DNA of 64,000 nt. Origin: Guillardia theta CCMP2712 (lineage: Eukaryota > Protista > Cryptophyta). The notes below the pieces were generated by a model. That model made no database searches. It saw nothing but the letters and a program-made list of their open reading frames with translations, and had not been told where the DNA came from. The position numbers were made by a program, and so were the translations under genes. The stretch lies in contig NW_005434644.1 in NCBI RefSeq assembly GCF_000315625.1, forward strand, positions 316,973 to 380,972, in the 5' to 3' direction. Below, one piece after another: positions 1 through 6,042 of the stretch; the stretch's first letter is position 1; each line of letters begins with the position of its first letter.

Positions 1-250
1 CCTGGATCTCGGCGGAGAGGTTGTTGCCGAGAGCAGCCTTGAGCTCGGCCATGTCGATGCTGCCAGAGCCGTCCGCGTCGAGCTTGTTGAAGAGCTCCTT
101 GGTGAGCTTGACCTCTTGCTCGATCTTGGTGGGAGCGCTCTGCATGCGGAGGGACTCCGGGAGCAGGTGGCAGGGCGGGAGGAGGCCAGGCGGGGGAGGC
201 CCGAGGAGGCAGGGGCGAAGGCAGAGGCAGAAGCGATGGCAGCGAAAGCG
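1..250 (-). pseudogene. 5' part of an EF-hand protein gene with a disrupted plastid-targeting presequence (runs off window start)
   Basis: Minus strand from ATG at 145 reads MQSAPTKIEQEVKLTKELFNKLDADGSGSIDMAELKAALG, a canonical EF-hand loop. Upstream AFAAIASASAFAPASSGLPRLASSRPATCS is an ASAFAP signal/transit peptide, but it is out of frame because of ~8 extra nt and has no visible start Met. Confidence 0.6.
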
Positions 251-406
251 GGAGTGCAGGGGTATTACCTTGGGGTGGGGTGTCAACAAGTACCGGTACG
301 TTTCCCATCACTGTACTGTTTTTGTAAAGGTGGGGTATAGGGGGGCATTTGTTGAGGGGGTACCCTTACCTGGTGTGCATACGCCGAAGTTCCTTTAATC
401 GACAAA

Positions 407-426
407 AGGACTCCCGAAGGAGTCCT
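407..426. other. Perfect subterminal hairpin at the putative left end
   Basis: AGGACTCC-CGAA-GGAGTCCT, an 8-bp stem starting 8 nt after the left TTAA. Confidence 0.7.
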
Positions 427-667
427 GGACCAGCATGACAGGGGTCATTGATAGGTTTCAATCACCCATCCAATGGGGCTGTATGAGGGTCTTAAAAAAG
501 AAAAAAAAATCTTCCCTCCTCCGACGGAAAGTTTGTGGCACTGCTCGTTTCATCTTCCCGCCATTACAGAGTTTGCGGTCCGACAATACACTGAAACGAT
601 GGTAATGAAAAAAATGTAGCGACTACCTGCTATCTAACATGGTTTCGCCAGACTAACATACTATAAC

Positions 668-2733
668 ATGCCGAGGAAGAGAAAACGAATTACAGATGAT
701 TCAGACAACGGTCAAGAAATAAGTTATTCAAAACCATTCACGAGAGTCGTCAAATGTGGGTTATACTCGAGACTCAAGGTAGAGAACAGATCGATTTTAG
801 ACGTGATCGACAGATGGGTATTACATATCAGTCAGATCACATCAAGAGGCAGTATGATATTCAACTGTTTTCTGATATGGGGCAGGGATACAGGGAATTT
901 ACGATATGTAGTAGATGAAATCAAGAGAGCCAAATCGACCTTTTTCTGGAATGTTTTTACACTTGGAATGGAACAACATAGCCGTACAGATAACAAGTAT
1001 CCAACTCTACAACGTTTCTGGTCAGAGAAAAGACATCTTTTCGTTGATTTATGTAGAATTCGAGGAGACTCGCAAGCTATTGTATTCGCTGCAAATCAAT
1101 ATGGAACGAATTTCTACCAAGACCTGAAAGCAAATTTTACAAACCGATTGGAAAAGTTCATTGCCGAATTCTGCAAAGGAGAGTTACATATTAACCATCA
1201 GCAAGAAATCGAAGACGTGAAGAATGTATTGTTTCAAAGGAAAGATTACGAGTTGAAGACAGAAGTGTTTAACAGGAATAATTCACAGCAGATAGGAACC
1301 TTCATCGACCATATGAAACAACTAATTGGATTATCGGGGGACGAAGATCTTTTTAGTTTCAAATATGACAAATTTGATCATAGGTTGCAGAAAAATCTGT
1401 TTGAGATAATCGAGACACACATGTTCATGTTGAAGTTCTTCGAAGATCGTGGTCTCTCGAAAAAAACATTCAAGGCAGCACCAATGTCGAAATTCGGCAG
1501 AAAACATCTAACAATCGATAATGATGTGATGTATTACATTTTGAAAGAAGCGAACAGTTTGAAACCGGGAGAAGATAAAAAATCGTTCATGAGAATAGAT
1601 CAAACTTTGGAGAACTCTAGGAATTTCAGAAGGATTTTCGACTGTTCGAATCTGTTCAGAGATCAGAGAGAGGAGATTACAAGTATCACGACAGACGGTG
1701 TATCGGTTTGTTTTCGCTTCACGTTGATTATCAAAACAATCGATGGACTCGAACAGGAACCTTCATTGCGCACTACCAAATGGCTTGCCGATAGAAAAAG
1801 GGCTGAACGGAAATCGGCGAAGAAGATATCAATATCATACAAAGTATTACATGAAAATTCAGAATACCAAAGAGAGATCGAAGAATGTAAAAATTGCCCA
1901 AGGGTAATTGCGATCGACCCTGGGAGGAGCGTCATTATATCGGCCGTCGAACAATTCAGAGATGATCAACAAATAATCAGAAAAAGATTTCAGTTTTCGA
2001 GAAAACAATATTATCACGAGTCACATCTGAATCGCAATAAAAAGAAAAGAAAGACGTGGGATCAAGATATTCAATCGACATTGCACTATCTCAAGGGGTT
2101 CTCGAGTAAGTCTGGCGGCAGTCTATCAAGATTCGAAGACTATCTTCTTGCAGTTACAAGTCATTGGGAGGAGTTAACTTCGCATTATTCAAAGCGAAAA
2201 TACGCCAGGATGAAATTCGACATCTACATTTCGAAACGAAAGTCAGTCGACAGGTTTATCCGTACAATGAAAGGAAAGGGAGAAATAGAACCTGTTATCG
2301 CATATGGAAATGCAAGGTTCCCGTCTACAGGACGTCGAGGAGAAAGGCCTGTACCGCCGGGTCAGGTGGATAAGAAGAAGATTCGAGAATCACTACAGAG
2401 TCGTAGATGTTGACGAATACCGTACTACCAAGTGCTGTAACGATTGTGGTTCTGAGCTCGATGTGCTTCGACGGATTGAAAATACAGGGAACGAACCAGA
2501 CGAGACCTGTAGGTTGAAAACAAGGAAAAGTGAAGTACGAGGATTGAAATTTTGCAGATCATCGAGGTAATATCAAGTTTTGTATACTCCTGTAATTCAC
2601 CTTTTCATCTAACTGTTATCGTGACAGCTGTAAAGGAAAGCCGATCAAATCCAGGGACTTGAATGCTGCACTGAATATACTCACTTGTTTCAATGTGTTT
2701 CCTGAAAGACCGAATCACCTACGTCGCCCCTGA
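668..2733 (+). CDS. Fanzor (probably Fanzor1-type) TnpB-like RuvC nuclease, ~666 aa reconstructed; frameshifted in this copy
   Basis: RuvC-I VIAIDPGR; VIAYGNARF; after a 4-nt frameshift at 2357-2360, VRWIRRRFENHYRVVDVDEYRTTKCCNDC (catalytic Glu plus Zn ribbon); intron 2567-2627 then joins RGLKFCRSSSC to KSRDLNAALNIL (RuvC-III) and RPNHLRRP*. N-terminal MPRKRKR NLS. Segments 668-2356, 2361-2566, 2628-2733. Confidence 0.92.
2567..2627 (+). other. Spliceosomal intron within the Fanzor gene
   Basis: GTAATA...CTAAC (2609-2613)...GACAG, 61 nt. Removing it restores the second Cys pair and RDxNAAxNI. Confidence 0.88.
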
Positions 2734-2944
2734 GGTGAATTCAATGATTGTTGTCGCCCCCTCCCTACCCAGACTGCGTCCCTCGGGACTCGATGCCTAA
2801 TTCCCTGCCTGCCTGCCTGCCCGGTGCCTGCCTCCATTATGATCCGATGTTTACGACATGTGATCATTGAAGTGACTGACTGGCATCATTTGGTAGGATT
2901 CATGTAAGGCTCCAACAACATCCGAAGACAATTTGGCAAAAAAA

Positions 2945-3125
2945 AAACAACTGCCGTTGTATGACGGAGAGTCGCGGCTCTCAATCATACGACGGCAGTT
3001 CTGTGCGAAAACTTAGTTCGTCGTTCAGAAGGGTATTCACATATTCCGTCACCGTGACATCATGAGGGAGAGTACCCGTGGTAGATAGATTCGTGGCGTT
3101 TATCTATTAAGTGGATTCCTAAACC
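2945..3125 (+). ncRNA. Candidate Fanzor omegaRNA scaffold (to ~3110) plus flank-derived guide (~3111-3125)
   Basis: Long stem 2949-3000 (AACTGCCGTTGTATGA/TCATACGACGGCAGTT, one G-U pair, inner GAGAG/CTCTC). Stem GGGTATTC/GAGTACCC 3031-3077 with a G-U pair. Terminal TAGATA/TATCTA stem 3082-3106. Lies downstream of the ORF at the element end, as expected for TnpB/Fanzor. Exact ends unknown. Confidence 0.65.
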
Positions 3126-3470
3126 TAAACCCCTCCTAGTCCGGGCCCGGCAGGGAGTCCGGCGGGGCGCCGCCCGGCGGCAACTTGCTTCGGATCATCG
3201 GATGGGCCGGGCCCCGGCCGCCCGGCCGCCGCAGGTGATACCTCTTCCCCGCTATGACCACGTCAGTTATTAAAAATGAAGAAAAACCTTGGCATGCAGC
3301 TTGGCATGGCATTTTGCTGCCAAGGGGGAGAAAGGGGAATGGCGGCGTACAAGTAATTGAGGAGCAGAAATCAGCAGCAAAGAAAGAGTTCGACGGCATC
3401 AAGATGTTTTATTTCGGTAAGAGTGATCTGATGTGATCAGAAGATTGTTGCCACCTATCACAGTCGAACG

Positions 3471-6042
3471 ATGAAAAGAGAATATTTGGATCCCGATACC
3501 ATAACTCCTCGTCTCCCTCTTCCTTACCGGATGATAGACAATCTGATCAGATCGCTGGTGGAAGAGGCTCTGGAGCAGACGAGGGACGACAAGGAGCAGG
3601 AGAAGGCGATCGATAGCGTATCGGCAGTGTTCGAGTACCACCAACGGAAGGATATCATCCTATCACAGGCCAGCAGCGATGGCCTCCTCGTGTTTGTCTG
3701 TACGTCTTCTGGCTCCCTTGAGTGCATCAACTCGCTGCGGGGAGCACAGGTCGGGGAGCCGATAGTTCTGGGGGAACCCGCTACATGCCTGACGCTGAGC
3801 TCGGATGGAAGGGCTCTGGCGGTGGGGCTGCGTTCCAAGGTGAACATCCTGCAGGTGATGAAGGACTCTCCTTTCTTGAAGCACTTGTTGAGCATCGAAA
3901 CACGGGGAGTGCCGAAGAATTTGGCCTTCTCCTCAGACAGCACTGTGTTCGTGGTGATTTCTGAAGCCGAGGAGCTTGAGCTATTCAGGATCGCCCTACC
4001 AGAAGTTCCCGTTGTCGAGGAGGAAGAAGAGGCTAAGAACACATCCTCTGAAGCCAGTGGAGAGAAGAAGGAGGAAGCAGAGGGCGAGGAGCTAGTGCCT
4101 ACCATGAAGGATCCGGTGCGAGTGCTGCGGCTCAAGTGCAGCAGGGAAAAATGCAAGAAGATGTTTTTTCTCGGGCTGGCGCCAAAGATCAGAAGAGTCG
4201 GCGAGCTAACAGGAAGAGAGTGTCGTCACCTCAACATCGTCAACGTCGGCACCAACATCCTCGAGAGGTTCGACATTCCGTTGAAGGAGTGGGAGGACGC
4301 AGAGGGCAGCGAGGCGAAGGGGTTGGCGGACGTGTCTATTACCTTGCCAAACCTTGTGACGACAGGCGCCATGGACGACACGACGGCCATGCTGATCATC
4401 GGGATGAAGAACGGGAGCAGCATCATCTGGAACAACCTGCTGAACTCCCACCACGCCACCTTGAAGAAGCACAAGGGCGCCGTCACCTGCTGCGCCTTCA
4501 CCGGGTACTCGTCGGACAAGGAGGCAGTCCGTGCGATCACATGCAGCGAGGTCTGCCGATCACCCCTGGTGCTTCCCTGTGCTGATGATGCTTATTGAGC
4601 AGGACAACTCCATCTACATCCACAACCCCGTCGACGGGAGCATACACCACGTCTACCGGGATGACCATCTCAGGGCAATCGACCTGGTCTGCCCGACCAC
4701 GATCCCTATCTTCCTCCTCGCCTCCGTCTCTCTCCATCAAGTCTGGGTGTTCAGCATCGACAGGAAGGAGGTCGCCGCGACCCTCAAGATGCCCTCCGAC
4801 ACCCTGCGTGCCAACATCAACATCTGCACGACTGGCGGGTTGGCCGGCGAACTCCTTCCCGTCCTTAGCTTGATTCAGAAGCCAGCGGTAGAGGAGGGAG
4901 GAGAAGGAGAGAAGGAGGTGACGGACGACAGCGAAGCCCCCAAGGCAGAGGAGGAGTCGACGCTGCTCGCGTACCGCCTCATCGACGTGTTGAAGATCGT
5001 CTACCCGGACATGGTCCGAAAGCCGCCAGGGCAGTGGATGCAGACGTCAGCGGAGGAGACGTACTGGCAGCAGAGGATGCCTGCGTTTGCGGGGAGCGAG
5101 GCTCCTGCTGTGTCGGAGACGTACCTGAGGTAGGAGGAGAAGGGGTTGTAGAAGGAAGGCAGCGGGGGAAGGTTGGTGTGGTGGGGGTCAGGGTGGAGGG
5201 AGAGGAGGAGGAGCCGGTATGAGAGGGAATAACGAGTTCTCCTTCAAGGCAAGCCCAGCAGGTGTCAGGCCTTGCAGGCGGCAAGTCTCCTCTTCAGAAG
5301 CAGGGCAGCCTAAGAGGCGAGTCCCCTCACCTTCCCCGCTCTTCTCCCCTACCAGCCGGGGTAGCGTCCCCCTTGGAAGTTCACGTTGACCGAGCACACA
5401 AGCGCAACTCCATGGTGGTCCAGCCGACGCAGGTGGCGCGTGCGACGGGGTGCCGGGGGGGTCTGATGTGCGAGCAGGAGACGATCAATCCGATGCTGAG
5501 GAATCGATCGCTGGGGACTTTGCTGTCGAGGAAGAATCAAACTGGCAGGTTCATCCTCCTAACTTCTCTTGTCCTCTTCCTCCTCTTCCTCCTCTTCCTC
5601 CTTCTCCGCCCCCCCCCCCTCCCCACCACCCCCCCCGCCTTCTCCTCCTTCCAACTCAGAGTCCTCACCTTTTTAGCCCCGTGTTGCCCTGCTGCTCGTC
5701 CTCCCCGCTCCCATCCTCCTCTACCCGCACCTGTGTCTCTGACCTCCTCCTCCGGCTTGACTTACTCTTCTTCACTCAGAAACTCAAAGTCTCCGCAATC
5801 CAGCGCTGCGGACTCGTTTCATGTTGTTGTTCGTATCTTTCCCTGCTGGTGAGCTGACAAGAACTCCAGGTGGCGAGTCGGTCGAGCGGGGCGTTGGCTG
5901 ACGCGGGAAGTGGGGGAGGAAGGCCGCCGAGTGCTCGCAAGGACGGCGGTTCTACTCCAGTCCTGGGCAAGGTAAACACCAGAGGAACTGAATTGGGAGG
6001 GGCGGGGAGGAGGAGGAGATGGAGGAGATGGAGGAGGAGATA

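Follow-up and report, generated by a model that had tools for sequence, protein, structure and literature searches.

A candidate omegaRNA scaffold in the 3' non-coding end of a probable Fanzor1 transposon from Guillardia theta

The interval 2949-3110 of the window, by which is meant the whole stretch of 64,000 nucleotides that was analysed, is the 3' non-coding end of a Fanzor1 transposon (392-3110), a multi-copy and non-autonomous element, and probably encodes the scaffold of its omegaRNA. This reading is the best supported one, mainly because a boundary that is exact to the nucleotide, with variable flanks beyond it, is found beside a bona fide Fanzor1 gene. A structured non-coding region lies 3' of that gene and ends at the right end of the element. 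An omegaRNA scaffold had been proposed at this right end in the initial annotation, and the boundary, the Fanzor1 gene, the placement known from published systems and the presence of RNA contigs speak for it, while the accompanying argument from G-U pairs fails for the first stem. Fanzors, the counterparts of TnpB and Cas12 in eukaryotes, have guide-RNA systems that have been known since 2023; the natural role of these nucleases is poorly understood. The features on which the argument draws are the following.

392-431, forward strand: left end, consisting of CCTTTAATCGACAAAAG (terminal inverted-repeat motif) and then a perfect 7-bp hairpin, GGACTCC-CGAA-GGAGTCC
668-2566, forward strand: exon 1 of the Fanzor1-type nuclease, frameshifted in the window copy
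2356-2359: 4-bp insertion, GCCG, which shifts the frame of the window copy
2567-2627, forward strand: intron of 61 nt, GT..AG; spliced joint 2566/2628 in two X10 contigs, depth 17.5
2628-2733, forward strand: last exon, beginning CKGKPIKSRDLNAALNIL; stop codon at 2731-2733
2735-2896, forward strand: optional 3' UTR intron of 162 nt, GT..AG, 1 nt past the stop
2949-3000, forward strand: stem 1, a 52-nt near-perfect palindrome of 15 + 6 bp with 2 G-U pairs
3000-3029, forward strand: weak bulged hairpin, -7.5 kcal/mol, absent from the initial annotation
3031-3077, forward strand: hairpin, z -2.1, with a 6-nt indel (3051-3056) at its tip that is absent in most copies
3079-3109, forward strand: terminal hairpin, 12 pairs including 4 G-U; z -3.35
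3107-3110, forward strand: TTAA, the right edge of the repeat, ...CTATTA(A)
3111-3125, forward strand: candidate guide in the flank of the window copy, its start supported by copy-to-copy variation

Four public sequencing runs were compared over 2200-3450 (X1 and X5, DNA; X10, RNA contigs; X26, raw RNA). In X1, the word depth is flat at 49.5 up to 3081 and 4.4 from 3124, a drop of about 11-fold; in X5, it is flat at 991 up to 3081 and 55.6 from 3124, which is about 18-fold lower. The long repeat contigs end at 3109/3110 (2404-3109 in X1, 2450-3109 in X5), and at least four unrelated flanks branch off after 3109/3110 in the k-mer-overlap contigs of the two DNA runs. After 3110, the flanks read GTGGATTCC (window copy), ACACCTAAAG and TGAATCTTAG, and a fourth, (G)GAATAGGCA, follows 3109, where it reads GGAATAGGCA. 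Conservation had been expected to stop sharply near 3106-3110, and this is what the repeat depth, the contig ends and the flanks beyond them display. The start of the guide next to TTAA is likewise supported at 3110/3111 by flanks that differ between copies; a length of 15 nt for the candidate guide is suggested by analogy with SpuFz1. The depth ratios fit some 10-20 near-identical copies of the element, summed depth not being equal to copy number. Copies carrying the scaffold without the ORF, for which the initial annotation had suggested a search, are not in excess over the 3' half of the ORF, since the depth is flat over 2452-3081. A second subfamily of the element, roughly 5-7% diverged, is present and transcribed (2370-2700; X10 contigs). 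X1 has loose ends at 2204 and 2404, and the diverged subfamily is seen without its right end.

Two related sequences, L001 and L002, match the window from 391/392 and run past 3110 to their ends (3367 and 3228, respectively). Beyond 3110 they show a SNP at 3128 and indels in a GC-rich tract, and their left flanks are unlike that of the window and unlike each other. Their continuity past 3110 was considered as a refutation of the boundary and set aside given the branch point in two independent DNA runs. Because the DNA runs branch at 3109/3110, L001 and L002 probably represent this right-hand locus as it stands in a related strain; their left side would be an arbitrary assembly path through the repeat. 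The GC-rich tract itself (3130-3250) shows a strain length polymorphism, with indels of 3, 26 and 23 bp, and lies between the element and a host gene with high expression, whose start is near 3290-3318 on the same strand.

Within the 64-kb window, blastn and tblastn gave no further copies of the element, and there is no second left-end motif and no second match to the guide, the 15-mer at 3111-3125 occurring once. Neither a relative nor an exact right end was found among viral contigs and JGI metagenome contigs. The left-end motif has six matches in viral contigs, which were taken as chance, with no Fanzor nearby. A short C-terminal protein query for right-end fragments returned no candidates.

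The element occupies an AT-richer island (GC 0.38-0.45 versus 0.54-0.61 around it, in a reading of 1-4200) in a window that is GC-rich, rich in low-complexity sequence and eukaryote-looking. Its left boundary lies at (T)CCTTTAATCGAC: homology with L001 and L002 begins at 391/392, and all three left flanks differ. When the right end is reverse-complemented (TTAATAGATAAA), it agrees with the left TTAATCGACAAA in 10 of 12 positions, TTAA included, so that the 3' arm of the terminal hairpin is a degenerate right terminal inverted repeat. A long inverted repeat between the two ends was not found, the alignment score being no better than that of shuffles. The related Logan contig L009, whose protein P0008 is 34% identical, opens with the same left end (29 of 35 nt identical). 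The motif common to both is CCTTTAAnCGnCAAnAGGAyTCCC-N-GGAGTCC; the 7-bp hairpin is kept in L009, with a C-G pair becoming U-G. In L009, the motif stands at 1-40 and, inverted, at the other end (2257-2273), which gives clean 17-nt terminal inverted repeats.

The bases just outside the left end are TTAA/CC in L002, TTAT/CC in L001 and AGTT/CC in the window, and the junctions of L009 read TTAT/CC...GG/TTA. Taken together, these outer bases hint at a TTAA-like target site. A check for a piggyBac-like TTAA duplication had few junctions to draw on, with mixed TTAA, TTAT and AGTT on the left and a right end that stops at a TTAA which may be internal or terminal, and no transposase was seen.

The gene upstream of the stems is, judged by its sequence, that of a Fanzor1-type nuclease. 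A long ORF at 668-2413 continues in another frame at 2304-2570 and then to the stop at 2731-2733. The insertion at 2356-2359 is missing from the X1, X5 and X10 contigs and from L001 and L002, and most copies are without it; the window copy could supply RNA, not protein. An intact and otherwise near-identical version of 632 aa, P0001, was found on two ENA metagenome contigs in a search of 5.8 billion proteins. Among solved structures, P0001 matches SpuFz1 alone (8GKH and related entries, E 1.1e-6), from RuvC-I to the zinc finger, and an exhaustive HMMER search gave 1388 relatives, the nearest cluster representative being 36% identical. In an alignment with 11 relatives, the conserved motifs are AIDPGR (RuvC-I D) and VDEYRTTKCCNDC (RuvC-II E and the first CxxC) before the intron, and FCRSS/S/CKGK (second cysteine pair) and SRDLNAALNIL (RuvC-III D) after it; VDEYRTTKCC in exon 1 is also kept among relatives. 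Splicing of 2567-2627 thus restores the second half of the zinc finger and RuvC-III, and the last exon aligns with the C-termini of P0004-P0012, including the RuvC-III motif SRD.NAA.NIL. A TnpB-type split RuvC domain with D, E and D and a zinc-finger (TNB) insertion of the pattern CxxC..CxxxxC is therefore found in the majority copies, the window copy being frameshifted. The Pfam match to Cas12f1-like_TNB is weak (E 0.0016, below the cut-off). Eukaryotic traits are a spliceosomal intron and a basic, NLS-like N-terminus, MPRKRKR. The nearest relatives, L006 and L007 (35-36% identity), are on gene-dense contigs that also carry PARP, histone-like, dsRBD and YqaJ genes, and these contigs look like giant-virus DNA.

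Folding of 2940-3130 (191 nt) on the forward strand gives a minimum free energy of -67.9 kcal/mol (z -5.39), which none of 200 shuffles equalled, and folding of the reverse strand gives -54.5 kcal/mol (z -3.0). The forward fold has hairpins at 2950-2999, 3000-3029 (weak), 3031-3077 and 3079-3109, with 2, 1, 1 and 4 G-U pairs, respectively. Three stems had initially been described about 210 nt past the stop and ending at TTAA; both statements are confirmed, stem 1 beginning 216 nt after the stop codon. The last stem, described as 3082-3106, is present, but its real extent is 3079-3109. A run of ten A (2939-2948) lies just 5' of stem 1, and most genomic copies have one A fewer at 2938.

The folding signal is uneven: it comes mostly from stem 1, and that of the remaining 110 nt is modest and specific to the forward strand. 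Stem 1 has -35.2 kcal/mol and z -9.0 on the forward strand and -30.9 kcal/mol and z -7.9 on the reverse strand; since it is palindromic and stable on both, it is uninformative on the strand and on RNA versus DNA. In a sliding fold scan of 281-3680, the sole outliers are windows containing all of stem 1. For the last 110 nt (3001-3110), z is -1.9 on the forward strand, with 10 of 200 shuffles as good, versus +0.1 on the reverse strand. The terminal hairpin has -8.8 kcal/mol on the forward versus -2.2 on the reverse strand, where it is weaker because a third of its pairs are G-U. The G-U pairs had been adduced as a sign of selection on RNA rather than DNA structure: the argument is sound for the last stem, with 4 of 12 pairs, and fails for stem 1, as that stem folds on both strands.

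The 6 nt at 3051-3056 are missing from the X1, X5 and X10 contigs and from L002, and the majority variant without them keeps the same fold, with z -6.6 for the whole scaffold. Over 2733-3110, the copies are identical except for the length of the A run and this indel at the hairpin tip, and such near-identity leaves no covariation. The location of the indel at the tip and the strand-specific G-U pairing are indirect hints of selection on RNA stems. Rfam covariance models gave chance-level matches alone (E >1) in window positions 300-3400. The scaffold does not align with the 3' regions of the relatives P0002-P0012 (contigs L003-L009 and L016-L018).

It could be imagined that all stems but the palindrome arise by chance in the folding of a non-coding tail that is moderately GC-rich. 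The z of just -1.9 for 3001-3110, with as many as 10 of 200 shuffles doing as well, would agree with this, as would the unremarkable sliding windows without stem 1. However, chance does not account for the marked asymmetry between the strands (z -1.9 versus +0.1) or for the z of -3.35 of the terminal stem, and it would have to let structure, inverted repeat and exact boundary coincide; we regard it as very unlikely.

A second possibility is that the stems are cis elements of the right end at the DNA level, that is, binding or cleavage sites or hairpins for a transposase, with no guide role. In favour of this, stem 1 is truly palindromic and folds stably on either strand, the degenerate right inverted repeat forms the 3' arm of the last stem, the left end has a conserved hairpin too, and Fanzor1 genes often reside in non-autonomous elements that end in hairpins or TIRs (PMC3627910; PMC10530073). 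Beyond some 12-14 nt, however, the stems have no mirror at the left end and are therefore not simply inverted-repeat DNA, so that about 150 nt of structure confined to the right end would be left unexplained. Moreover, the last 110 nt fold on the forward strand alone, through G-U pairs that are poor in DNA, and the related L009 has its clean inverted repeats and none of these stems. A purely DNA-level role thus appears rather unlikely, and, by analogy with IS200/IS605, roles as cis element and as RNA could coexist.

The interval is covered by RNA contigs. The X10 depth is 18-63 over the ORF, 1.05 over 2746-2787, 11-16 over 2788-2955 and 6-8 over 2956-3123; at the window copy, it is 0 over 3124-3249 and 330-550 from about 3292, in the host gene. 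The contig depth over the scaffold is about one fifth of that over the ORF, and the depth of 6-16 is not DNA carry-over since it is 1 in part of the same repeat. The dip at 2746-2787 was considered as the 5' end of an RNA, an idea that was dropped, as it is a variable (TGCC)n tract that breaks the contigs there. This microsatellite (2799-2830), situated in the 3' UTR of the element, varies by copy and breaks assembly graphs. The joint of the 3' UTR intron, from 2732/2734 to 2895/2897, is found in one X10 contig (depth 3.5), and unspliced contigs occur too; with the intron removed, the scaffold is about 53 nt past the stop codon. An X10 contig of 403 nt extends from 2895 through 3110 and then for 194 nt into the flank of another copy, the contigs carrying no information on strand or ends; this read-through contig could be a host transcript that crosses another copy. 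The raw RNA run X26 contributes 16 reads only. CT..AC joints at 2223-2292 and 2627-2685 are present in X10 contigs, the former also in two raw X26 reads, and they look like GT..AG introns of an antisense transcript across the Fanzor ORF.

These RNA data also bear on a third explanation, in which the stems are an ordinary structure in the 3' UTR of the Fanzor mRNA, involved in stability or 3' end formation, or a hairpin for small-RNA silencing by the host, with no guide function. The interval does lie in the 3' UTR of the mRNA, downstream of a spliced UTR intron and covered by RNA contigs; the 21-bp near-perfect hairpin resembles a Dicer substrate, and the antisense-like splice joints suggest transcription of the element from two strands. 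Yet a promoter and terminator scan gave no terminator-like or poly(A)-like feature, and neither the nucleotide-exact abutment to the element boundary nor the use of the inverted repeat by the terminal stem is explained in this way. Furthermore, nothing in it is peculiar to a gene all of whose relatives rely on a 3' guide RNA, and the explanation is considered unlikely.

For the omegaRNA reading, we infer a mechanism that extends to the ends and strand of the RNA, its binding by protein, its guide role, the TAM and cleavage. Transcription of the element would run through the 3' UTR and over the right end into host DNA, and trimming of the transcript would leave a scaffold of at most about 160 nt. 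This scaffold would consist of the terminal hairpin, with its right inverted repeat, and of the hairpin 3031-3077, and would probably include the long hairpin 2949-3000 as well. Some 15 or more nt of flank would act as the guide, which for the window copy would begin with GTGGATTCC at 3110/3111. Because the window copy is frameshifted, its scaffold RNA would be bound in trans by Fanzor protein from intact copies. The RNP is then predicted to cut guide-matching DNA beside a TTAA-containing motif, in other words the empty insertion site.

A TTAA-containing TAM is a reasonable prediction by analogy, since the TAM of SpuFz1 includes a few conserved bases that lie outside its left inverted repeat (PMC10432273) and the TAM of GtFz1 from Guillardia theta is TTAAN (PMC10432273; PMC11423790). 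With a TAM of TTAA and nothing more, the right junction of the occupied site would be targeted as well; a longer TAM could distinguish the CCTTTAA of the left end from the CTATTAA of the right end. A more far-reaching scheme can be sketched, in which a Fanzor1 family rides on a short-TIR, TTAA-targeting (piggyBac-like) element, the TAM is the TTAA site, perhaps together with the conserved CCT by the left end, the emptied site is cut by the RNP and the occupied one spared, and the omegaRNA is matured from the 3' UTR of the spliced mRNA. As a whole it seems improbable, and piggyBac is not among the Fanzor-associated transposon families of Jiang et al. (PMC10530073).

If an omegaRNA does come from a spliced 3' UTR, the production of guide RNA would be tied to splicing, and the source of the scaffold would neither overlap nor abut the ORF. 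The Fanzor family has been active recently, with its 10-20 or so near-identical copies being mostly intact, transcribed and correctly spliced. The exact right boundary makes the scaffold, the start of the guide and the TTAA-type motif directly testable, in the source organism or in yeast. With the locus comes a further Fanzor1 lineage, whose nearest sequenced relatives share only about 36% identity with it, and no new principle.

Among the systems with which the element can be compared, L009 shares the gene family and the left-end motif; unlike the window copy, it has just 76 nt past the stop, with no similarity to the stems. Bacterial TnpB of the IS200/IS605 type, for example ISDra2, likewise combines a RuvC nuclease gene with a scaffold at the 3' or right end and a guide from the flank, and its TAM is the insertion-site motif, as predicted here. 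In contrast, the present gene is eukaryotic, with spliceosomal introns, the element is of the TIR type and not a hairpin-ended Y1 transposon, and the scaffold is clear of the ORF.

GtFz1 resembles the element in having a long scaffold, of 139 nt and four stem-loops against three to four hairpins here, and in the TTAA of its TAM (5'-TTAAN) against the TTAA ends here. The protein and RNA sequences, however, are unrelated at a detectable level, and the omegaRNA of GtFz1 overlaps the last 17 codons while the present candidate is well downstream of the stop. The element was ruled out as GtFz1 itself, its sequences differing from the supplement of the paper, and neither its protein nor its scaffold sequence occurs in the supplements to Saito 2023 and Yoon 2023. 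Fz1 scaffolds range from 75 nt with two stem-loops to the four of GtFz1, and only the 7-bp first stem-loop is conserved (Xu et al. 2024, PMC11423790). In published Fz1, this 7-bp SL1 contacts RuvC/TNB; none is evident in 2949-3110, where stem 1 has 15 + 6 bp, and SL1 could lie elsewhere in the candidate RNA.

SpuFz1 (PDB 8GKH) is the closest solved protein (E 1.1e-6). Its element, too, has a single ORF, about 2-3 kb, tens of copies, inverted repeats at its ends and conserved bases outside the left inverted repeat, which are CA in SpuFz1 and (T)CCT by TTAA here. Among the differences, the two proteins are similar only in the RuvC and zinc-finger half; the scaffold proposed here has about 160 nt and three to four hairpins against 75 nt and two, and it is 216 nt past the stop, beyond an optional UTR intron. 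Also, the inverted repeats are short and degenerate here (about 12 nt versus 30), and the ends show TTAA instead of TA/CATA. The omegaRNA of SpuFz1 consists of a 75-nt conserved scaffold across the right inverted repeat, followed by a variable stretch of 14-15 nt from the flank (Saito et al. 2023, PMC10432273), and structured, conserved non-coding regions have been described that continue beyond the ORF for about 200 nt, as far as the right end (Jiang et al., PMC10530073). In its placement, boundary and size, the locus described here fits these published Fanzor1 omegaRNAs.
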